From the NCBI RefSeq assembly GCF_000315625.1, contig NW_005434670.1, forward strand, positions 558,016 through 622,015: 64,000 nt of DNA. The letters run 5' to 3'. The notes beneath the pieces were generated by a model that was not told the origin of the DNA, did no database searches, and worked only from the letters and a program-made list of their open reading frames with translations. This DNA is from Guillardia theta CCMP2712 (taxonomy: Eukaryota; Protista; Cryptophyta). This document shows, one piece after another, positions 21,120-48,547 of this stretch; position 1 is the first letter of the stretch; every line of letters starts with the position of its first letter. A program made the translations under genes and the position numbers.

Positions 21120-21395
21120 TGTTTCAATCTGTATAGAATTCTTTACAACACTACGATCGTTACGTGCTTGCCATCAAAGCTCCAATCACTCCTTCTCACC
21201 TGACATCCCTCCCAATACAGCTGGAGGACAAACTAGAGAGGAAGTTCAACTCTCTCACCCTCGACGATTACATCAACAGCGCTCTCCCTCAGTCTCAAGT
21301 CATCGCTCCTTTCTTCTCATAAACCTTCTTGCTACATGCTTTCTCTTGGTACACCTCAACTCCTGACTCTCGCCAAGACCACTCTCCCTGCTCCC

Positions 21396-21442
21396 AGGCC
21401 AGACGGATTCGAACCGCCCCCCTCGCGCCCTAGCGCTGGCCC
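21396..21442 (-). ncRNA. Miniature tRNA-like (mascRNA-like) element downstream of histone H3
   Basis: Minus strand reads GGGCCA-GCGC TAGG GCGC-GAGGGG-GGCGG TTCGAAT CCGTC-TGGCCT: 6-bp acceptor-like stem, 4-bp GG-loop hairpin, 5-bp T-stem with canonical T-loop, no anticodon arm. Confidence 0.7.
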
Positions 21443-21452
21443 TTGTGTGTTT

Positions 21453-21468
21453 GGTGTTGATGAACACC
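21453..21468 (-). promoter_or_regulatory. Histone mRNA 3' stem-loop (H3)
   Basis: GGTGTT-CATC-AACACC (6-bp stem, 4-nt loop) followed by an AC-rich flank, 38 nt after the H3 stop codon. Confidence 0.8.
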
Positions 21469-21506
21469 TGTATCTTGGTTCCTTGACCGTCTCGTCGTCC
21501 TCGAGC

Positions 21507-21971
<465 letters not shown>

Positions 21972-22000
21972 TTAGATCGGAGGCAGGGACAGGTGTGTTT

Positions 22001-22943
22001 CAAGGACCCTACGAGGAGACCAGGGAAAATAAGGCAAATCAGGGGGTACAGGTGTGCAGGGTGATAAAGACACGGGTGGAAGAGAATAGGAGGGAGGGGG
22101 TGAGGAGGAGGTGGGGAGAGAAAAAAAAAGAAATGACCCCCTACCCAGAAGACTACAGGAGAAAAGGCAGGGGAAAGGAGGTAGGGTAGGGACAAAGTAG
22201 GGGAGCACCGGGTGGGCATAGGAGAAACACAGGAGATGGAAGAAGGGTGGGTGGGGATTTGAGTTTCCGAATACCACCGGTGCCTAATGAGATCAAAAGA
22301 GGAGAGGTGGGTGGGGACGATGGAAAACAAGAGCTTCAAGGACCGGGTCTATCACAAGAAATAGGTGTGAAATCAGGTGGTAGGGGTAGTAGATCACCAA
22401 TTCAAACACAACTGGTCTGATGAGCCGGAATTTTTGAATGGATCTGATCACCCCTACCCCCTCATTCCCACCTTCAGAAAGACAAAATACCCGGTTCTCA
22501 ACAGTGCACCCCACCCCACCCTGCTTGCAACACCTGTGTTTCTCCTATTATCTACTACCCCTACCACCTGATTTCACACCTATTTCTTGTGATAGACCCG
22601 GTCCTTGAAGCTCTTGTTTTCCATCGTCCCCACCCACCTCTCCTCTTTTGATCTCATTAGGCACCGGTGGTATACGGAAACTCAAATCCCCACCCACTCT
22701 TCTTCCATCTCCTGTGTTTCTCCTATGCCCACCCGGTGCTCCCCTACTTTGTCCCTACCCTACCTCCTTTCCCCTGCCTTATCTCCTGTAGTCTTCTGGG
22801 TAGGGGGTCATTTCTTTTTTTTTCTCTCCCCACCTCCTCCTCACCCCCTCCCTCCTATTCTCTTCCACCCGTGTCTTTATCACCCTGCACACCTGTACCC
22901 CCTGATTTGCCTTATTTTCCCTGGTCTCCTCGTAGGGTCCTTG
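22001..22943. repeat. Long inverted repeat upstream of H3: arms ~22001-22394 and ~22550-22943, ~155-nt spacer, right arm cut by an N gap
   Basis: caaggaccctacgaggagaccag...ggggtagtagat recurs as its reverse complement with a few substitutions. Mirror ORFs 21950-22339(-) and 22605-23075(+). Confidence 0.95.
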
Positions 22944-23043
22944 NNNNNNNNNNNNNNNNNNNNNNNNNNNNNNNNNNNNNNNNNNNNNNNNNNNNNNNNN
23001 NNNNNNNNNNNNNNNNNNNNNNNNNNNNNNNNNNNNNNNNNNN

Positions 23044-25156
23044 GGAGTGAGCAGTTGAAACCTCGTACTCGGTGAGGGAAGGAAATCGATTTCTTTCCTC
23101 TCCTCCTGACCCTTCAACTCTGAAAACTTCTCAGCATCCTCGCTGGATGCTCCGCCGTGCTCTGCTACTTCCCCAGACACCCACGAGCTCCTCCCCCCTT
23201 GATGTTCCGTCTCCTCTTCCTCCTCTTCCTCCTCTTCCTCCTCTTCCTCCTCCTCCTCCTCCTCCTCTGCCTCCTCCACCCCTGCATCCTTGATTATGTC
23301 GGCTTGTGAGCTTCGCTTCGGTCGCGCGCGGTCTTGCATTCCCTTCATCATGTCCTCCAGCTCCCCTGCACGCGCTTGCCGAGAACCCACCCGGAGGAGC
23401 GAGTCGAGGTCGACCCCTCCGACTTCCTGAAACCAAAACGTCATCCCCATACTCTTCCTCCCCCCTTCTCGCTCTCCCACCCCTCTTCCCCAACCTCCGT
23501 CTCCCTCCTCCTCCTCCTCCATCAACATCGTCACCATCATCGGTACCTCGTGTATGTTTGTCTTCTCGCACTGTCCATCACCATGTCCCTCATTCGTCTT
23601 GCTGGAGCTGTTGTCTGGAGAGATTCTCGGCTCGCTACCGCCTCCAGCCTTGAGATTGACTGCTGCTGCCTCCTCCTCGCCGCAGAACAAGCTCCCAACG
23701 CCCCTGTGCTCGACGACTGTCGTCCCTGCTTCTCCTGCTTCCCCTCTCTCTCCACGCTCTACGTGCATCCCTCCCTCCTTCACTTCCCCATGATCCTTAT
23801 CCACCGTCACCCCTTCTTCCTTTTTCACCACCACCTCCTCCTCCTCCTCCATCGTTGTTCTCTCGCCCTCGTGTTTGCTCTTGCCAGCCCCACTACTGTC
23901 CTTGTTTGCGCCAATGTGATTCTCCTCCTCCTCCTTCTCCTCCTTCTCCTCCTCCTCCTCGTCGCCTCCCTCCTGTATTTCTATGTGGCCCTTGCCATTG
24001 CCCTTGCCCTCATTATCCTCCCGCTCCTCCTCCCCGCTCCACGTCTCCTCTTCTCCCGCAGTTGACTTGTCATCTAACTTTTGAATGGCGAGCAGGAGCA
24101 GTTTTGAAAGCTGAGAATCACTGTTTTTCAGAGCTGAAGGCAGCACTCGTCATGGAAAGCAAGCACTTTGAGAGGAGATGGAGGGGAGGGGAGGGGAGGG
24201 GAGGGAGAAGGGAACAGGGTTGGTGGAGCACTTGCAAGAAGGCAAGGACGAGAGGAGGACAAGATAGGGCTGTACAGGAGTCGACAGGGGAGTGGAGGAG
24301 GAAGGGGGGGAGCATGGGAAGGAGGAGGAGGAGGAGGAGGATGGGAACGAGGAATGTCTCCCTTACTTCGTCTGAGATCCTCGGCAGAGGATTCCTCCAT
24401 GTTTGTGAATAGGTGTTGGCCCTCCTGCAGCAGCCGCCGCAGGCTCTGCTCCAGCGACTCCTCCTCCTGCTCTGCCCAGTGAGACGAAGTGGGAGGGAGC
24501 GAGAGGAGCGTGAGGAGGAGGAGAGCTGGAGGGGAGCAGGTGAGAGACTAGACCTGGATGTCCGAAGAAGATGTCTCGACGGCAAGCAGAAGGAGGTTGC
24601 TGAGCAATGAGTCCCTTCTCTTGAGCGCTGGTCAAGGCAGGCGAGTCACTCGGATCAGTAGACAAGACGTGAAGCGCGGAGAGAGGAGGGAGGGAGGGAG
24701 GGAGGGAGGGAGGGAGGGAGGAGGAGGAGGAAAAGAGAGAAGAGAGAACAAGGCGATGGAGTAGGGAGCAAGCCAGGCAGGAAGGAGGAGAGCATACCGT
24801 CCAACAAGCTCGCAGCGTCAGGGCTTTCGATGGAGGACAGGAGGAGGCTTCCTTCAGAGAGGATCTGACTAACGAGGGAGGACAAGTTGAGACGGATCCG
24901 CTCGTTGCCGCCCCAACGCTCCTCCTCCTCCTCCTCCTCCTCCTCCTCCTCCTCCTCTCTCCTGTGCGTTCCGGTCTGAGGTCTGCCAAGAACGTGTCAT
25001 GATGACTGGCATTTGTCTCGGGAGGCAGATCGATGCGCCTGCTGTCTCGGAGGGGTGGGGGGGTGGCTGAAAGAAGGAGGGGAGAGCGGGGGGTAAAGCA
25101 AACGAAAGGAGCGGGTGGATAAGAGTATCGAGAGGAGGAGGAGGAGGGGGAGGAGG

Positions 25157-27719: not shown

Positions 27720-28500
27720 GTCGGCGGGCCGAGCACCCGGTGGCACCGTACGGTACTGACAACGGGGCCCGGGGCCCGCCGCCGGTGGCGCCCCCCCCCG
27801 CACCGGGCCCCGGCCGGGCCCGGGCCGGGCGGGGCGGCCGGGGCGCGCGGCGGGCGCCGGTCCGTCGGCGCCGCCGACGGACCCGAAGTACGGTTCCTGG
27901 CCCGGGCTTCTACACGGTACGGTACTAGAACGGAGTCCTTCAAGTCCCGCCCGGCCACTGAGTGGGGGGCTGGCCTGCCGGGTCCAGAGAGCTCAATTCA
28001 CCGGCGGCGGCCGCCACTGTGCTTGCCTGCTTGACCGTGCCAGTGACAGTCCGGCACTGAGTAGGGCCTAGGGGCCGCCGGGCCGCTGAGGCTCCGAGCC
28101 GGGCGGCCCGTGACCGTACAGTGCGGCGGCCGCCGGCCGGGCCGGCGGCCGGGCCGCCAGCCTGGCCCCCGCCACAGTGCGCCGCCGGGCACACTGTCGG
28201 ACCGTCCGGTGGGTGTCGGAGTCCGACCGACGGTCCGCCGGACGGTGGCACCGTGTAGGGGCCAGTCGGACTGAGTCACTGGGTAAATTAGTAGAGAGGC
28301 CCGGCATGGATCGGACTGAGTCCTTGGCAACGGTTGAACCGTGGCGCCCGGGCCGGGCCGGGACACGCGCCGCCCGGCCGCGGCGCCGGGCGGCGGCGGC
28401 CCGGCAGTCGTACAGGCTCCACCGGGCAGACGGCGGCGCCGTGCCACTGAACTTCCGAAGCAGCAGGCCGCAGCATACCTTTTCGATGCCAAAGGCCAGG
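27720..28500. repeat. GC-rich, palindrome-dense intergenic island; related islands at ~37010-37600 and 40140-40420/44100-44160
   Basis: Dense CCGG/GGCC/CCCGGG runs with recurrent CCGTAC, GTGCCACT and GGCACTG words. No credible coding signal. Confidence 0.6.
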
Positions 28501-40437: not shown

Positions 40438-43400
40438 AGTTAAGTTAAAAATCAGTACGAGGACAATCAGGAGAGTCGAGGAGGCTTGACCCTGACACTG
40501 TCGCACAGGCCAAACGGCGAGAAGAGAAAAGACAGCGAGAACCAAACCTAAACCTGCCGACTGCTGTCCCCCAAACTTAACTGATACCTTCACTTAACGG
40601 CGCGCAGGACAAGTCCCCGCGCGGCCATGCCAGCGATGTCGCGGTGGCCGCCGCCGAAGGAATGAGACGCATACCGGGATGCACCCGCGATGATGGCAGC
40701 GTAGGACAGGGAGGCCTTGAGCTGACGGAAGATCCTGGACCGAATGCGTTTGCAAGTCGGATCACCTGAGACGTCTTGCGAGGCCGAGAGACCATCCAGC
40801 GCTGCCGTTTCCTTGTTCGCCGAGCGATCCGCCAGCCACCACAGAAAGCGCAACGCATCGTCCTGCAAGAGGCCATCAGTGCTGGCGATGATGGGAAGAA
40901 AGGCCTTTGGCGGGACGTGCTGAGCATATGCATTACGATGCCCTCGGATCTTCCGCTGTGCTGCCGCTTGCAGTTTGCTCCGAGCGAGGTCCGGTATTCC
41001 ATCATTGTCAAAAACATGTGACATGCTGAAGTCCAGGATTAACCCATGCCATCCGCCGCCAGTAGCCATCAGTTGTGGAAGTTCAAAGTCCCCTACATGA
41101 TGATCTTCAGGGCCATGTTGGGAAACGTTCTGCCTGGTGCCGGGTACGCCTTGCACGTGGACGCGGCATCTCACTCCGGAATCTTTGATGAGGGTACTGA
41201 GGACGGCATTGCACTTCTCATGCGCATCAGTCCATAACTGGCTGCGGTGCCTGCAGGTTGCCATGTGTGTGGTCCCCCCAGGATGACGAAGAAGATGATG
41301 GCATCGATCGCAGTGCGGCGGGAGGTCAACCGGCAATCCATGAAGAAACTTGTCAGCGGCAGCCACCAAGCTGATGGGCTGCTGCTCAAAGATCCCAAGG
41401 TTTGTACTTTCCATAGTCGAGTGCCAAATCGTGCGCTGAGGGGTAAACTGAGACAGAAGGTCATCAACCGGGTGGCCTGGTACTCGAAGGGGAGTAGAGA
41501 AGCTGGAGTGGTGTGCCAACAAAGATCTCTGGCGCTCTGAAAGGTGAGCCCGAATACTGCGGAACCGGGGAAACTCCGAGAGGAACTGAGCCGTGAGCTC
41601 CCGCTGGGCGGGGATGAAAAGCGCACTGCCCGACGTCCCAAATAATTCAGGCGAGGGGATCCAGCCATTGTCGCACGCCTGAGGAAGCTCCGCCAAGGAG
41701 GTGTACGCCGAGATGCCCTGCTCCATCAAGTGCCTGTGAGTGTCCAAGAAGGCAGCAAGCATGGGGACAACATCCCCAGCGTCCGCTTGCTGCGGTTGGC
41801 GGATTCGAAGCTCAGTGTCAGAAATGATCCGGTGGAAGAGTGGCGGTGTAGGGAAAGTCCAATGCTGGAAGATGGCAATTTCACCCGCCCATTTGAGAAA
41901 CTTGGCAGTCGCCGACCAGAATGCGGTGTAGGCCACGCCCTCCTGCGGGGTGAACCCATCTCCTCCAGCACTATAAGGCAACTGACGTTTGAAGTAGGCG
42001 AACTGAAGGTCAGATGGAGGGGTGCCAGGGGCAGGTTGCAGGACAGATGAACCCTCCTGTGCCTGGTTCTGTGGCCACTGAAACACCTTCGCCAGGAGAC
42101 GGAGATTCGCGACGTCAAAGCACTTGCACTGGGCAGCGGTCAAGGCCGGGGAGATTCCACGCAAGAAATATTGGAGGGTGGGAACGTGGGTCGTTTTCAA
42201 GAGCTGCTTGAGACCCAACGCAATGGGAAATTGTTCCAACTGGGTCAATTCAGCATTGAGGGCATTCACCTTGGCAGTGATAAACTCTTGCTGGAAGGAC
42301 TGAGATCCTATCGGGATACCTCCCAGGATGATCCCCTGGCCGCGGAAGGCAAACTGCTGCAAGCCCGGGTACCTGCTGCAAATATGCTCTTGGATGGCTT
42401 GTTGCTGACTAGATTGAAGTTCACACCAGGACGAGGAGAATATCTGCGAATCCCTGGGTTGAATCTCCAATCCTAGCTCTTGTTTTAAAGTATCAACCAG
42501 CGATGCAGTAGCCTGTGCGGCAACTGAGAGCTTTCCAATAACAGCCATGTTATCCGCATAGGCCGGGAAGACACAGTCGGGAAAGGTCTCTGCGACTTTG
42601 ACCAGGGAAGGGAAGGTGGTGTGCGCAAAGAGAGCCATCGCCAAGGGGTCCCCCTGAGAAACTCCCGTGGTGGCCGAAAAAGCCCGAGTCTCTCGCTGAT
42701 GTTTCAGAAATAACTTACCTGCCTGGCCATAATATTGATGAACATACGGAAGGACTCCTTGGGAAAAGTTCTCACAACGATGCTCGGGAGCAAGGAGGAT
42801 GTCAAATAGCCGTTGGCGAGAGATCTCATTGAAGGCATTTCTTGCGTCGATCATGATGATTACCGTGGGATCAAAATTATCAGACTCACCTTCGCCCTGG
42901 TCTGTGAATGGGTTGGCAAAAGAATGGGGTCCTAACAGGCATTCGATGGTCTTGCAGAATTTGAGACAACCTTCCTCCAGACCCACGCAAAATTGCAGGA
43001 CCCGAGAGTGACTGAGGGTGAAGTGGCTCTCCAAAGATTTTCGGTAGAAACGACAGAAGATGCTAGACACAATCCTTCGCTCCAGGTCCCCTATCACAAT
43101 AGGTCGGATTCCGCTCTTTTCCACTGACTTGGCAGCAGGAATGAATCGCCCCCCTCTGGTGTATTCCTCGAGGAAAGCGCCCGAAGGGATTCCCAGCGCG
43201 ATCGGCTTCAATATGAGGTTAATGTATCGCTGTTTGTGATCATCATGCAGTCTGAGAATGTGTCGCAGGTGCTGGAACGGTCGCCAACCAAATTGATCAG
43301 GGGCCGAGGAAGCAGTGAATCGCCGCAGGAATTTCCCTACCTCTCGCTGATCTAAAATCTTGTCAAGCAATGAGGCCGGTTCATCGGCGATGGCATCGTC

Positions 43401-44092
43401 GAGCTGAGCACTTAGCATTTGCCTTGAGGAGCCGACTGCGTCTAGGAGCGTTGGAGGAATGGGTTCCAGTCTCGTCGGAAATTTCTCACGAGTTTGCTGC
43501 CATAGGTGCTCAAATGGATCTGGGGAGAGGCCATGGCCCACAAGCGCCTGTCGAGCTTTCTTCATATCCCGATTTTGGTAATGCTCAACAGCCGAGAGGA
43601 TTTTCTTTTTCTCCAACTGCTCGCTCTCCATCACTGGCTGCTGCACGCCCGCTCTCGCACGGTCAGGTCCTTGTGGGCGACCTGCATTTTGACGGTTAGG
43701 TTGTTGGCGCCTACCTTGCGGTGCCCGCGGTCTCGTGCCTCGTCCCGACCCAGTTAGTCCCGCCGTGGGCTGCTGCGTGACATCCTGCGGATCTCCACCG
43801 CTGCCAACCGCTGGGCCGTCTTGGTCAAAAGAAACACCCTCTTCTAGTTTCAGCAATGTCTCCCAACGCCCTTGGAGGAAATGGTGGATACGGTAGCTCA
43901 CATCTCGGTTTTGTCGCGAGATTGCAAGAACTGGATTCACTCTCAGCAGGAGCAGTGGGAGACAATGCCACAAGCTCCGGATAATCTTAGCTTCCTCGCA
44001 ATGCAAGTCAGGGTAACCTTGTAGCAGGTCTAACGTAAACTGTAGCGCACTCTTCCATTTATCAATCGTCTGACTGTGACTGCGGCCTACTT
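40438..44092 (-). mobile_element. Non-LTR retrotransposon, RLE-type, CRE/SLACS-like clade, 5'-truncated
   Basis: Single intronless 1138-aa ORF with RT, CCHC knuckle and restriction-like endonuclease region. The frame stays open to ~44090 without an in-frame ATG at the start. TTTACTCAA occurs on both flanks. Confidence 0.88.
40590..44006 (-). CDS. Reverse transcriptase / zinc knuckle / RLE polyprotein
   Basis: SAPDQFGW, GIRPIVIGDLERR, QFCVG, IDARNAFNEISR, GVSQGDPL, YADN, LGGIPIGS; CxxC-x(12)-HxxxC; H...GD...LDFS...K...FLPIIASTDG. Confidence 0.92.
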   Translation of the reverse strand: MHCEEAKIIRSLWHCLPLLLLRVNPVLAISRQNRDVSYRIHHFLQGRWETLLKLEEGVSFDQDGPAVGSGGDPQDVTQQPTAGLTGSGRGTRPRAPQGRRQQPNRQNAGRPQGPDRARAGVQQPVMESEQLEKKKILSAVEHYQNRDMKKARQALVGHGLSPDPFEHLWQQTREKFPTRLEPIPPTLLDAVGSSRQMLSAQLDDAIADEPASLLDKILDQREVGKFLRRFTASSAPDQFGWRPFQHLRHILRLHDDHKQRYINLILKPIALGIPSGAFLEEYTRGGRFIPAAKSVEKSGIRPIVIGDLERRIVSSIFCRFYRKSLESHFTLSHSRVLQFCVGLEEGCLKFCKTIECLLGPHSFANPFTDQGEGESDNFDPTVIIMIDARNAFNEISRQRLFDILLAPEHRCENFSQGVLPYVHQYYGQAGKLFLKHQRETRAFSATTGVSQGDPLAMALFAHTTFPSLVKVAETFPDCVFPAYADNMAVIGKLSVAAQATASLVDTLKQELGLEIQPRDSQIFSSSWCELQSSQQQAIQEHICSRYPGLQQFAFRGQGIILGGIPIGSQSFQQEFITAKVNALNAELTQLEQFPIALGLKQLLKTTHVPTLQYFLRGISPALTAAQCKCFDVANLRLLAKVFQWPQNQAQEGSSVLQPAPGTPPSDLQFAYFKRQLPYSAGGDGFTPQEGVAYTAFWSATAKFLKWAGEIAIFQHWTFPTPPLFHRIISDTELRIRQPQQADAGDVVPMLAAFLDTHRHLMEQGISAYTSLAELPQACDNGWIPSPELFGTSGSALFIPAQRELTAQFLSEFPRFRSIRAHLSERQRSLLAHHSSFSTPLRVPGHPVDDLLSQFTPQRTIWHSTMESTNLGIFEQQPISLVAAADKFLHGLPVDLPPHCDRCHHLLRHPGGTTHMATCRHRSQLWTDAHEKCNAVLSTLIKDSGVRCRVHVQGVPGTRQNVSQHGPEDHHVGDFELPQLMATGGGWHGLILDFSMSHVFDNDGIPDLARSKLQAAAQRKIRGHRNAYAQHVPPKAFLPIIASTDGLLQDDALRFLWWLADRSANKETAALDGLSASQDVSGDPTCKRIRSRIFRQLKASLSYAAIIAGASRYASHSFGGGHRDIAGMAARGLVLRAVK

Positions 44093-44639: not shown

Positions 44640-46751
44640 ATGATGCGGAGTTTGCCTACATTTGCCTGGTTGCTTGGCATGGCGGTGTACATGCAGACCA
44701 CCGAAGGCTTCGGGTTTTCATTGCCCGGCAGGAATGGTTTGCACATGGGAAAAGGCCGATTTTCAAACGACCTAAAATGTGTCGGGAATCGAAGATGCAC
44801 AAAGCGCCATGTTCTCACTCCTGTCGCTCAATCATCAGGGGCGCAGGTTCTACAAGACGAGGATTTGAAGTCAGAGGGGAAGAAAGGTGATCCAGCAGGA
44901 GGATGGTGGAAAGATAGCAGTCCACAGAGAACAGTGGAACAAGCAAAGCTCAAGTATTTGAATCAGTTTCCAAATACTTGGCAACCGGCAGAGAGTCTAA
45001 CGCTAAAGCGCAAGGGAGACAAAAAGGACACGTACAAGACTGCAGGAGTTGAGTTTAAGACAGCAACTCCTGACAAAGTGTATGATGCAGCAATCGTAGG
45101 AACTGGTCCTGCGGCCATTGCCATGGCTGATGCCCTGGCTCTGGAAGGCATGACAGTTGCTGTTGTTGGGCCGATCGCAGGAGCGTGGCCCAACAACTAT
45201 GGCGTTTGGATGGACGAGTGGAGCGTGTTGGGTCTCCCCGACTCTTGCATCGAGTCGCAGTATGACACGACTAGGATCACTATCTCTAAAGGGAACAGCA
45301 TCAGCATTCCCCGCCCTACGGGAAGGTGAGCGGGCCCAAGACGCGCGAGTTCTTCCTCAGGCGATGTGCGGAGAACGGTGTCGAGGTCCTGGATGAGCTG
45401 GTGACGGACATTGTGCATGGGGACACTGAGAATCCCTCCGTCTTCAAGACGGCAGGCGGTGAAACCATCCGCTGCAAGGTGCCCGTAGTGGCGGCTGGTC
45501 ACTACTCGCCACTTGTCAAGTACCAGTCCCCTGGGGTGGAGTTCATGCGGATTGAAGGAGAGTACATGACGAGGGACTGGGGGAGGCTGCTGCAGGTGCC
45601 TCCCAACCAGAGGCCTGTCATCACCAACGAGTACGTCGAGTCGGGCCCCCTCTCTCAGCTGTCCTGGAAGCATAGCATCCAGTTCGACTCAGTGCGGCCC
45701 GGCCAGCATGCGTGGGGGTGGAACTGGGGGTGGAACCCTGTACTGCGTGGGCTCAAGGTTCCCAGCTTCATCCCACTCTTCGGGGACTGCGAAGCCATCG
45801 GAGGAGGAGCGCCAGGGTATCAGATTGCGTATGGAGTAACCGTCGAGTGCTCGGAGCCTCACGGCTTCCCCCTTGACGAGATGCTGTTGATGGACTTCAG
45901 CACCGACCACCTTGAAGGGGACGAGGAGCTGGAGGGAGGCATCGACGGGCACGTGCCGACCTTCCTGTACGCCTTCCCCTACGACGAGAAACGAATCTTC
46001 TTGCAGGAGACCCTCCTTGTAGCCAGGAACCATCGCGCGTTCGCCAAGTCTTTGCAGATGGAGGAGATGGTGAGGAGGGTGAACAAGCGAATCGAGAACC
46101 TCAAGCTGGAGGTCACCAAACAGTATGACGAGGAGTACTCGGTCATCCCCATGGGCGGCCCTCTGCCCGTCCTCGGCCAACCAGTGGTCGCTTACGGGGC
46201 TGCGGGTGTGATGGTACATCCAGCTAGCGGGTACATGATCAACAGGGCGATCTTGTGGGCCCCCGAGGTGGCGCGAGCTCTTGCCTCAACCCTCAAGGAG
46301 ACCAACAATGCTCAGCTCGCTACGGAGGCTGCATGGGAGGCCCTGTGGCCCAAGCAAAGGCTCATCGAGCGAGACCTCTACTGCTTCGGAATGGAAGTTC
46401 TCCTTGACCTCGACGTTGCTCTCCTGAGAGACTTCTTCTCTGCCTTCTTCGCTGACCCCAAGGAGAAGATGTGGAGACAGGTCAGCTCCTGCTGCCTCCT
46501 CAACACGTGCTAACTTTCAACTAGTTCTTAGCATGGAGCATGACTCGTCCGGGAGAGAAACCATGGAAGATGAGCATCTTCATGATTCTGCAATTCTTCA
46601 GAGGCTCTTGGCCCCTCAAAGCAAGACTTGTTCGAGAAGCCATGTTCAAGGTGATGATACTGTTCAAGACTTGATTATCTTCTCATTCCTTTCACAGGAT
46701 GGTCTTCATCTTCTCAAAAGCATTTTCGAGATGCCGTTCCCTTTCGATTAG
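44640..46751 (+). CDS. Plastid-targeted CrtL-type lycopene cyclase (beta or epsilon); apparent 1-nt frameshift at ~45315
   Basis: Signal peptide ...QTTEG-FGF; dinucleotide-binding YDAAIVGTGPAA; WPNNYGVWMDEW; PGYQIAYG; PTFLYAFP; ETLLVAR; EYSVIPMGGPLP; VHPASGY; FGMEVLL. Confidence 0.93.
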
Positions 46752-46859
46752 GATGTAAAGATAGCAAGTGTACAATCTCTTTATTTTCCATGAACAATTT
46801 TTCACCACTGGTAGCAACCCGTTATTTAGAGCTTTTATATGCTGTGCCAAGAACAAAGT

Positions 46860-46906
46860 TTCGATCAGGAGCGGACTCGAACCACTCAGTTTCCAAACTG
46901 ATCAAA
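46860..46906 (-). ncRNA. Miniature tRNA-like (mascRNA-like) element downstream of the histone H1-like gene
   Basis: Minus strand reads TTTGATCAG-TTTGGAAACT-GAGTGG TTCGAGT CCGCTC-CTGATCGAA: 6-9-bp acceptor-like stem, short GG-containing linker or hairpin, T-arm with canonical loop. Confidence 0.7.
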
Positions 46907-46911
46907 TTGGT

Positions 46912-46926
46912 GGTGTTAATAACACC
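46912..46926 (-). promoter_or_regulatory. Histone mRNA 3' stem-loop (H1-like)
   Basis: GGTGTT-ATT-AACACC followed by ACCAA, 59 nt after the stop codon. The stem is identical to that of H3. Confidence 0.78.
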
Positions 46927-46985
46927 AGTTCGAGCTCCTTGTGTCAAGTAACGTAGGGGCCACGAAGCAATCGCACTGGCTGAAT

Positions 46986-47327
46986 TTACTTTTTCGTCGC
47001 CTTGGTGGTGGCAGTCTTCTTCGCAGCAGTCGCCTTCTTAGCAGGGGACTTCTTGGGCTTGGCAGCTGCCTTGGTCGCCTTGGGGGCCTTCTCGGCCTTG
47101 GGCTTGGTGACCTTGGGGGCCTTCTCAGCCTTGGGCTTAGTAGCCTTAGGGGCCTTAGTGGCAGTCTTCTTGGCGGGAGACTTCTTGGGGGCAGCGGTCT
47201 TCTTGGGGGCAGCAGCCTTCTTAGCGGGGCTCTTCTTGGGCTTGGTGGCCGCAGTCTTCTTGACAGCAGTAGCCTTCTTCGCGGGACTCTTGGCCTTGGG
47301 GGCTGCTGCTGCTTTCTTGGGCGGCAT
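46986..47327 (-). CDS. Lys/Ala/Pro-rich histone H1-like protein lacking a globular domain
   Basis: 113 aa MPPKKAAAAPKAKSPAKK... with repeated (K)KSPAKK CDK-type sites. Carries a histone stem-loop in its 3' UTR. A splice acceptor (tgtag) lies 3 nt before the ATG. Confidence 0.8.
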   Translation of the reverse strand: MPPKKAAAAPKAKSPAKKATAVKKTAATKPKKSPAKKAAAPKKTAAPKKSPAKKTATKAPKATKPKAEKAPKVTKPKAEKAPKATKAAAKPKKSPAKKATAAKKTATTKATKK

Positions 47328-48547
47328 CTCCTACATGTGAGGTTAGTCATGAGTCTTTGGAATGTAATTTCAGAGAGTTTGATGTGAAACATGAAGTCAA
47401 ACAAATAACATGCGATCGGACAAGAAAAATGCAGCAGTATCGGGGCAAAAATCCAGTTACCCTTCCAATTGCAAATAAACAGTCTATCAATGAACACAGC
47501 AAGGGCATAGAGGCAAGGAACAGACAGCAAGTGAGCATAGCGAGACAGAGGAGAAGGTCACTGCGGCATGAGCCCGGACATGGGAAGGTTACCGTGGCAG
47601 GCGTGGTAAGGATTCGGAGAAGGGCGGGAGGCAAGTAAAAGGAGGGGAAGGGGAGGGGGCAGGGGGAGGGGTCGTGGAGTGCCTGAGTACTCTAATATAG
47701 GGGGGTAGGGTTCAACAGAGATCCTGTGTTTGAGGTTTGATCGACTGCGGGGCTGTGTTCTTCATGGCCTACCCTTCCATTTCTTGTACCGGTACTTGGA
47801 CTCTTAAAAGTAGCTCTAAATAGGGGTATAATCGAGATCCTTGTGCAAGTCCAGGGGTGTCCATCAGTGGGGGTGGAGAGTTTTTTTCCCACGGGGGCAG
47901 GAAAGAATGGATGGTGAGGAATGTGAAACGGGGTGGGTGGGGGAGCCGTAGACCGGTGTCTAGGTATGGACTTTGCAGGGTACTACAACAGAGGGGCCCG
48001 GATGGTTGACAGGGGTGGGTACTCAACTGAGGCAGGCCGTTTCCTGTTCGAATTTTCAAACGATTCGAATTTTTTTTTCCTCGCCCGGGGCCGCAGGACC
48101 TCTGAGGCAGGCCTGAAAGGAAATAGGGAGCGACGGGCTGCGCCGTGGCTTCACATAACCGTTTGGCGGATAATTGTAACTGACAGGTACCAGAATTAGC
48201 CTCCATGGCGTGCTCCGTCTGTCGGGCGATAAAGGATGGGATGAATGGCGTGGGGAGGCAGTGGTGAGCAAGAGCAGGGAGCACCCCGGCCAATAGAGCA
48301 ACCTTGAGGTAGTGTCCGGAGGAGGAGTTCAAAGGCTGAAGAAAGAGGGAAGGAGGCAGCTGGAAGGTTAGCTCGGTCTCTGGATTTGAGCAGGGGAAGG
48401 AGCAGGCGCGTTCAATCGGTCAAGCTGGGCATGTTCTGATCGTTGAAAGGATAGCAGCAAGGTAAGGATATTACCAAAGAAGTGGACGTGGTGGGTGTGT
48501 TTTTCTCGGTGATGACAAATGCGTTTCAGGGAAGAAAAAATCAAAGC

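Follow-up and report, generated by a model that had tools for sequence, protein, structure and literature searches.

Background

RNase P cuts the tRNA-like structures of MALAT1 and MEN-beta and the t-elements of plant mitochondria, and so produces the 3' ends of the RNAs upstream of them. In MALAT1 and NEAT1_2 (MEN-beta; mascRNA and menRNA, Rfam RF01684) the tRNA-like structure lies directly 3' of a protective RNA structure, the RNase P cut on its 5' side makes the mature 3' end, and a read-through form uses a canonical poly(A) signal that lies further downstream. The plant mitochondrial t-elements and the tRNA punctuation model likewise have mRNA termini that are defined by tRNA-like landmarks for RNase P and RNase Z; these systems are organellar and polycistronic, and carry no histone stem-loop. 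The translated RNAs of plant viruses such as TYMV and BMV finish in a tRNA-like acceptor/T-arm mimic, with poly(A) lacking or dispensable; these structures are terminal, CCA-ended, and aminoacylated. Metazoan histone mRNAs carry a stem-loop (Rfam Histone3, RF00032) and a purine-rich HDE, which are served by SLBP, the U7 snRNP, and CPSF73. On the question how histone mRNA 3' ends were formed before this animal U7 machinery, current surveys distinguish only stem-loop/SLBP, U7, and polyadenylation states; one of them, a 2026 preprint on the evolution of histone 3' ends (10.64898/2026.10.14.759114), mentions neither tRNA, nor RNase P, nor cryptophytes. In a full-text search of the literature, thin for subscription journals, no paper described tRNA-like elements 3' of histone genes or the histone 3' ends of cryptophytes.

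The cassette described here, from the cryptophyte alga Guillardia theta and its relatives, bears on that question. As in MALAT1 and NEAT1_2, a tRNA-like structure directly follows a protective RNA structure, and a read-through form ends beyond it at a canonical poly(A) signal; by analogy, we propose that an RNase P cut may make the mature 3' end here too. In contrast to MALAT1, the upstream structure is a histone-type stem-loop instead of a triple helix, it sits on protein-coding mRNAs, those of algal histones, and the mimic has no anticodon arm; neither cassette in the analysed DNA matched RF01684 at E-values up to 10. The cassette shares with the metazoan histone system a 6-bp stem with a 3-4-nt loop, a GG/CC base, a U-A top pair, A-rich flanks (ACCAA here, ACCCA in Metazoa), and the specificity for histone genes, linker histone included; in the six genes measured the hairpin lies 38-112 nt past the stop codon. 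It differs from that system in the sequence of the stem, in the frequency of 3-nt loops, and in having no purine-rich HDE but a tRNA mimic where U7 would pair. The Rfam Histone3 model gives the copies behind the H1-like and H3 genes 15.4 and 11.7 bits, respectively, below its gathering score of 34. Whereas the t-elements are organellar, the cassette here belongs to monocistronic Pol II genes of the nucleus that have an AAUAAA further on; unlike the viral ends, the mimic lacks CCA and is followed by further sequence and a poly(A) site. What is new is the combination of a histone stem-loop with tRNA-like 3'-end processing signals, each kind being already known. The mimic adds a third component at the site of animal U7, across an algal phylum and in every histone class examined, and the question is testable in G. 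theta, which is culturable and genome-sequenced.

The cassette behind the H1-like gene

The window (the whole 64,000-nt stretch of G. theta CCMP2712 DNA analysed here) contains an H1-like gene at 46986-47327 on the minus strand, taken from the list of open reading frames and identical in the NCBI gene model of assembly GCA_000315625.1. It encodes a 113-aa Lys/Ala/Pro-rich protein (starting MPPKKAAAAPK) with no globular domain, for which no Pfam family was matched; short K-rich ORFs orthologous to it sit before the same cassette in environmental contigs. Its stop codon TAA (46988-46986) is 59 nt from the stem-loop of a cassette that occupies 46860-46934 on the same strand; the sequence and coordinates of its parts from 46926 to 46860 are exactly those given in the initial annotation. 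The histone-type stem-loop GGUGUU-AUU-AACACC (46926-46912; 6 bp, 3-nt loop) is flanked by a conserved AACU on its 5' side and by A on its 3' side. The spacer ACCAAUUU (46904-46911), made of ACCAA (46911-46907) and TTT (46906-46904), separates it from the tRNA mimic (46863-46903), a minihelix of 41 nt with no anticodon arm. The parts of the mimic are: the acceptor stem GAUCAG/CUGAUC (46903-46898 and 46868-46863); a 10-nt connector (46897-46888) with GG at 46894-46893; the T-stem GAGUGG/CCGCUC (46887-46882 and 46874-46869); and the 7-nt T-loop UUCGAGU (46881-46875). A G occupies the discriminator position (46862).

The minihelix is the minimum free energy fold of this copy, at -14.2 kcal/mol and an ensemble probability of 0.95. 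The competing hairpin, from which the initial annotation suggested a bistable fold, does exist in the sequence, but at only -4.6 kcal/mol and a probability of about 1e-4, which disposes of bistability. Acceptor and T-stem stack as 6+6 bp; the UUU of the spacer can pair with GAA at 46862-46860, lengthening the acceptor up to 9 bp (UUUGAUCAG/CUGAUCGAA) and the stack to 9+6. The connector GG lies opposite the T-loop in what appears to be a mimic of the tRNA elbow, the tertiary contact itself being inferred. Concerning the 3-nt loop, of which the initial annotation had asked whether it was real, two RNA assemblies (X1 and X6) and one DNA data set (X14) show no difference from the window at the cassette. 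The loop is therefore real. That X1 and X6 derive from RNA is evident from the introns of the neighbouring lycopene cyclase gene, which are spliced out in both.

A sister cassette behind histone H3

A second cassette was located by both pattern and covariance model at 21392-21476 (minus strand), behind a histone H3 gene with its CDS at 21507-21917 (minus strand). Its stem-loop GGUGUU-CAUC-AACACC starts 38 nt past the H3 stop codon and is followed by a spacer of 10-11 nt, a D-like hairpin CGC-UAGG-GCG, and the T-loop UUCGAAU. The stem-loop pattern occurs twice in the 64-kb window, each time behind a histone gene, against an expectation of 0.01. Two covariance models were used: R1, built from 24 cassettes, and R2, built from 31 cassettes of other loci, from which the two copies in the window had been withheld together with the loci nearest to them, L004 and L076. 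Run without filters on both strands of the window (128 kb), R2 returned only two cassette matches: the H1 copy (46858-46934, 50.4 bits, E 7.4e-11) and the H3 copy (21392-21476, 46.6 bits, E 6.5e-10; 61 bits with R1). The best match elsewhere in the window scored 11.7 bits. An alternative register of the H1 copy offered by the covariance model (from the GAUC palindrome; acceptor UUUGAUC/GAUCGAA with a 2-nt D-loop) was judged an alignment artefact.

Distribution across cryptophyte histone genes

An exact-protein look-up with the G. theta H3 led to two metagenome contigs and to a further H3 gene of G. theta itself; the module is present at each of these three loci, with differing minihelix sequences. 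The exact-protein look-ups of H3 and the H1-like protein yielded genome and metagenome contigs only, and no transcript contigs. A metagenome scan for a pattern of stem-loop plus T-loop returned 120 loci, which R1 separates cleanly into true cassettes (45-93 bits) and others (36 bits or less); about 85 of the 120, bacterial tRNAs or chance matches, fell into the latter range and were dropped. All true cassettes with enough upstream contig lie 3' of H1-like, H3, or H2A ORFs. Pfam confirms the H2A assignments, and one of these H2A proteins is 98% identical to a protein of Baffinella frigidus, where both genes of a divergent H2B/H2A pair are followed by a cassette. Nine further H2A/H2B pairs were found via the H2B protein alone and are free of any bias from a DNA pattern, since they were chosen by protein identity only; a cassette was present at every gene (18/18), with variant T-loops and with a stem-loop top pair that changes from U-A to C-G.

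The module has now been seen in G. theta, B. frigidus, and some 40 environmental cryptophyte-like contigs, and the classes that carry it are H1-like, H2A, H2B, and H3; there were no H4 genes among the loci examined. The Baffinella and environmental pairs stand in for G. theta H2A and H2B, neither of which was identifiable among the protein matches. Neither the 64-kb window nor 21 kb of Baffinella has a cassette behind a non-histone gene, and a scan of IMG/VR viral sequences gave no true cassette. The module is histone-specific, and general in every cryptophyte source sampled. One environmental H1-like gene (locus L023) is followed by two complete cassettes in tandem (416-494 and 637-715), 143 nt apart; this gap is too short for a gene, which makes them a duplicated 3' module.

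Structure, covariation, and conservation

As read from the aligned sequences, the module consists of an invariant stem-loop, an A-rich spacer of 1-11 nt, and then, in this order, acceptor stem, GG-bearing D-like hairpin, and T-arm; the anticodon arm is absent throughout the family. The stem of the stem-loop is invariant across the family except at its top pair, which covaries between U-A and C-G; loops of 3 nt, like that of the H1 copy, occur in 8 of the 27 cassettes that make up our alignment A4, and the majority of the cassettes identified after it have them too. The first base of the spacer nearly always is A. Acceptor and T-stem together stack to 11-13 bp, and the T-loop, mostly UUCGA, has an invariant A58. 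The middle part usually is a hairpin of 3-5 bp with a near-invariant GG at the 3' end of its loop, resembling G18/G19 of the D-arm; at the H1 copy and at L076 it is reduced to a connector of 10-13 nt that keeps the GG. The family has no conserved purine-rich HDE, the mimic starting 1-11 nt after the stem, and the mimic has neither an encoded CCA nor a conserved discriminator.

The scan pattern fixed only the stem-loop and the T-loop and left the covarying helices free. In A4, which was fitted to the structure by a model and so favours pairing, 88.8% of cells pair against 74.4% in shuffled alignments (0 of 500 shuffles reached 88.8%), and controls with slid partners gave 37-51%. Changes on both sides of a pair were found at all seven acceptor pairs, all five D-like pairs, and five of the six T-stem pairs. 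RNAalifold alone recovers the stem-loop, the acceptor, and the T-arm, with compensatory changes in 11 of 17 pairs. The anatomy that the initial annotation had read from a single copy (stem-loop, A-rich flank, and an acceptor/T-arm tRNA mimic) is hereby strongly backed by conservation and covariation across histone classes and cryptophyte species.

Could the resemblance be due to chance, or to a decayed tRNA or SINE relic with no function? Standard annotation would agree: ARAGORN left the cassettes uncalled and reported only a tRNA-Ala at 27817-27910 in the window; Rfam at gathering thresholds gave nothing at the cassette; the tRNA family RF00005 did not match, apart from a 14.8-bit tRNA-Sec at E 2; and permissive E-values brought up only sub-threshold Histone3, snoZ185, and tRNA-Sec noise. 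Such an origin accounts neither for E-values of about 1e-10 from a model that had left the window copies out, nor for compensatory changes in a module that holds one and the same place after genes of four histone classes, in several lineages of cryptophytes. We rejected it as next to impossible: covariation, the 18/18 histone genes, the leave-out model, and RNAalifold all refute it. The module is real and selected.

The selection could in principle act on DNA. The cassette contains a B-box-like GGTTCGANTCC that might recruit TFIIIC (ETC-type), or the mimic might be a small Pol III gene, and such an element would act as an insulator or as a roadblock to Pol II behind highly transcribed histone genes in a compact genome. 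The B-box consensus is perfect in most copies, and a convergent neighbour is close: the lycopene cyclase stop codon is 109 nt from the cassette end, in agreement with the roughly 110 nt noted initially. Against this reading, which we hold to be very improbable, pairing is better conserved than the B-box sequence: both the acceptor and the T stem show covariation, and at loci reached independently of the pattern the B-box has drifted (CTCGAGC, TCCGACT, TGCAACT, TTGAACT), which points to selection on RNA pairing. It also leaves the tight phasing with the hairpin unexplained, and no consistent T-run follows the mimic.

Transcripts through and up to the cassette

The one RNA run available as raw reads (X18) consists of 60-nt reads, nearly all from the minus strand and decaying upstream; it appears to be 3'-tag or oligo-dT primed, and non-adenylated ends are therefore invisible in it. 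Eight reads carry non-templated T-runs (on the plus strand) before 46764/46765, which is the poly(A) addition site of a read-through H1-like mRNA (minus strand). The site is 15-16 nt past an AAUAAA at 46785-46780 (minus strand), which itself lies about 75 nt past the H1 mimic (77 nt from the last acceptor base, 46863). Read depth is flat, at 18.7-20.7, across 46788-46970, and there is no pile-up of ends at 46903/4 in these poly(A)-anchored reads. A polyadenylated H1-like mRNA that keeps the whole cassette exists. The initial annotation had held that poly(A) reads running beyond 46860, with no ends at its predicted site, would refute processing there; in the poly(A)+ fraction that is what the reads show, X18 being blind to non-adenylated ends.

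In relatives, AATAAA follows the mimic at 7-27 nt in 12 of 26 cassettes (11 at 7-12 nt and one at 27 nt), against a background of 0.016 per 100 nt; there is none within 200 nt of the G. theta H3 genes. Because AATAAA is so close behind the mimic in many relatives, polyadenylation after the mimic looks selected, and it probably is part of the normal pathway, as a precursor or as a fail-safe, in the manner of MALAT1. A conserved block AACGTGA...AATAAAG directly 3' of the mimic in Baffinella-like H1, H2A, and unassigned cassettes (loci L006, L014, L021, L086, L096, L107, L121, L122, and L133) may be an upstream element of the poly(A) site or a binding site for a protein.

Other RNA data point the other way. 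The H1 contig of X6 (4.5x) stops at 46925, at zero depth across 46788-46909, with the neighbouring cyclase at 189x. For the H3 gene, 11 words were sampled from the mimic and the 96 nt downstream of it: all are present in DNA runs; none of the 11 is found in the RNA runs X6, X9, X10, and X11 (three studies); and all are present in the RNA runs of two other studies. Shares of words cannot prove absence and the X6 evidence for H1 is one contig of 4.5x; with that scope, the contig end and the word shares suggest mRNA ends near the hairpin. The RNA data are thus split, and are compatible with a cleaved major form beside a read-through form that depends on library or growth.

The read-through isoform could itself be the mature one. 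The cassette would then be an uncleaved 3'-UTR element: a poly(A)+ mRNA that keeps both stem-loop and mimic, which together would serve as a binding platform and tie its stability or translation to S phase, the stem-loop being bound by an SLBP-like protein and the mimic by La, eEF1A, exportin-t, or tRNA-modifying enzymes. The directly observed poly(A)+ isoform with intact cassette (X18) and the AATAAA 7-12 nt past the mimic in many relatives agree with this, and stem-loop and polyadenylation coexist in early-diverging fungi (10.64898/2026.10.14.759114). It is a tenable but rather unlikely explanation. A full acceptor/T stack with T-loop and D-loop GG is expected to be a substrate of RNase P, the spacing of 1-11 nt between hairpin and mimic would have no explanation, H1 coverage in X6 stops at the hairpin, and the H3 mimic and flank words are missing from four RNA assemblies.

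Alternatively, tRNase Z might cut after the mimic, which would then form the mRNA 3' terminus as a substitute for poly(A), with the RNase P site shielded by a stem-loop protein. The 1-11-nt spacing could indeed let a protein bound to the stem-loop block RNase P, a discriminator position is present, and plant viral RNAs offer precedents. We consider this very unlikely, given that CCA is not encoded and the discriminator not conserved, that the X6 contig of H1 stops before the hairpin and not after the mimic, and that an AAUAAA just downstream would be redundant.

RNase P as the proposed 3'-end nuclease

In our main reading, to which we would give an even chance, the mimic is cut by RNase P at its 5' edge, so that the histone mRNA would end in the stem-loop. 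This reading is favoured by the full set of RNase P and tRNase Z determinants in the family (11-13-bp stack, T-loop, and D-like GG), the close phasing of mimic and hairpin, the lack of an HDE, whose U7-binding position in Metazoa is occupied by the mimic, and the hints from RNA. Pol II would transcribe past the cassette to the downstream AAUAAA site; RNase P would recognise the mimic by its acceptor/T-arm stack and its D/T elbow, and would cut at the mimic's 5' edge, either between 46904 and 46903 or directly after ACCAA. The product would be a non-adenylated mRNA that ends in the stem-loop, presumably bound by an SLBP-type protein, while the mimic, with or without a poly(A) tail, would be released and trimmed by tRNase Z. 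The polyadenylated read-through isoform (46764/5) would be the precursor or a fail-safe product. Two cut sites are conceivable as the acceptor is extendable to 9 bp: the +1 position at 46903, which the initial annotation had obtained from a 12-bp ruler, stays a plausible site and now shares that status with the one after ACCAA. Similarly, its proposal that an RNase P cut yields the mature end retains its plausibility, next to X18 reads that are uncut and show no ends piling up at 46903/4. Speaking against RNase P, no cleavage product was observed, the H1-like mRNA of X18 runs uncut through the cassette, and an AATAAA near the mimic fits an uncleaved poly(A)+ mRNA as well.

In its general form the proposal is that cryptophytes make all their histone mRNA 3' ends, that of the linker histone included, independently of U7, by RNase P acting on an anticodon-less mimic directly behind an SLBP-type stem-loop; here too we see the scales as evenly balanced. 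If true, these would be the first class of nuclear protein-coding mRNAs with ends set by the tRNA-processing machinery, and the downstream AAUAAA would serve only termination or fail-safe polyadenylation. The MALAT1-type mechanism would then be a recurrent solution for abundant, cell-cycle-linked coding mRNAs, and not an oddity of vertebrate lncRNAs. As a compact and portable 3'-end signal, the module could serve in the design of cryptophyte transgenes.

The convergent neighbour and the 5' end of the H1-like mRNA

The lycopene cyclase gene on the plus strand has introns at 46479-46522 and 46649-46695, according to the RNA contigs of X1 and X6. After splicing, its stop codon TAG is at 46749-46751, as placed by these contigs and by translation of the joined exons. 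The cyclase RNA contig ends near 46773 and the H1-like mRNA is polyadenylated at 46764/5, 13 nt from the cyclase stop codon, which gives the two mRNAs a tail-to-tail overlap of about 10 nt. At the other end (47331-47340, minus strand), the X1 contig tracks the H1-like mRNA to 47331, after an acceptor-like site (...tgtag) 3 nt before the ATG, and beyond this position it has 38 extra letters upstream, for which no match was found in the 64-kb window. This extension could stem from a 5' exon far away or from a spliced leader, or it could mark the contig as chimeric.

Other features of the window and its relatives

The environmental locus L076 (Ga0210355_1039853, 1-1138) has a full cassette at 3-75 (50 bits), the stem-loop and flanks of which equal those of the H1 cassette of the window over 25 nt, with the same T-loop core; the hairpin recurs at 1109-1138. 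Between the two hairpins lies an ORF (286-1008) that protein-atlas features assign to a Cressdnaviricota capsid (score 0.97), and for which Pfam and PDB gave nothing. Possibly L076 is a segment of nanovirus type, or an endogenous copy of one, and has taken over the histone 3'-end signal of its host; another possibility is that the hairpin also works as an origin of replication.

Between the two histone loci of the window, the ORF at 40590-44006 (minus strand, 1138 aa) looks like what we take to be the reverse transcriptase of a retroelement. The tRNA-Ala, with anticodon GGC, is on the plus strand, and its length of 94 nt suggests an intron. Just upstream of the H3 gene, the ORFs at 21950-22339 (minus strand) and 22605-23075 (plus strand) encode near-identical peptides and form an inverted duplication (21950-23075) around an assembly gap (a run of N at about 22900-23000).
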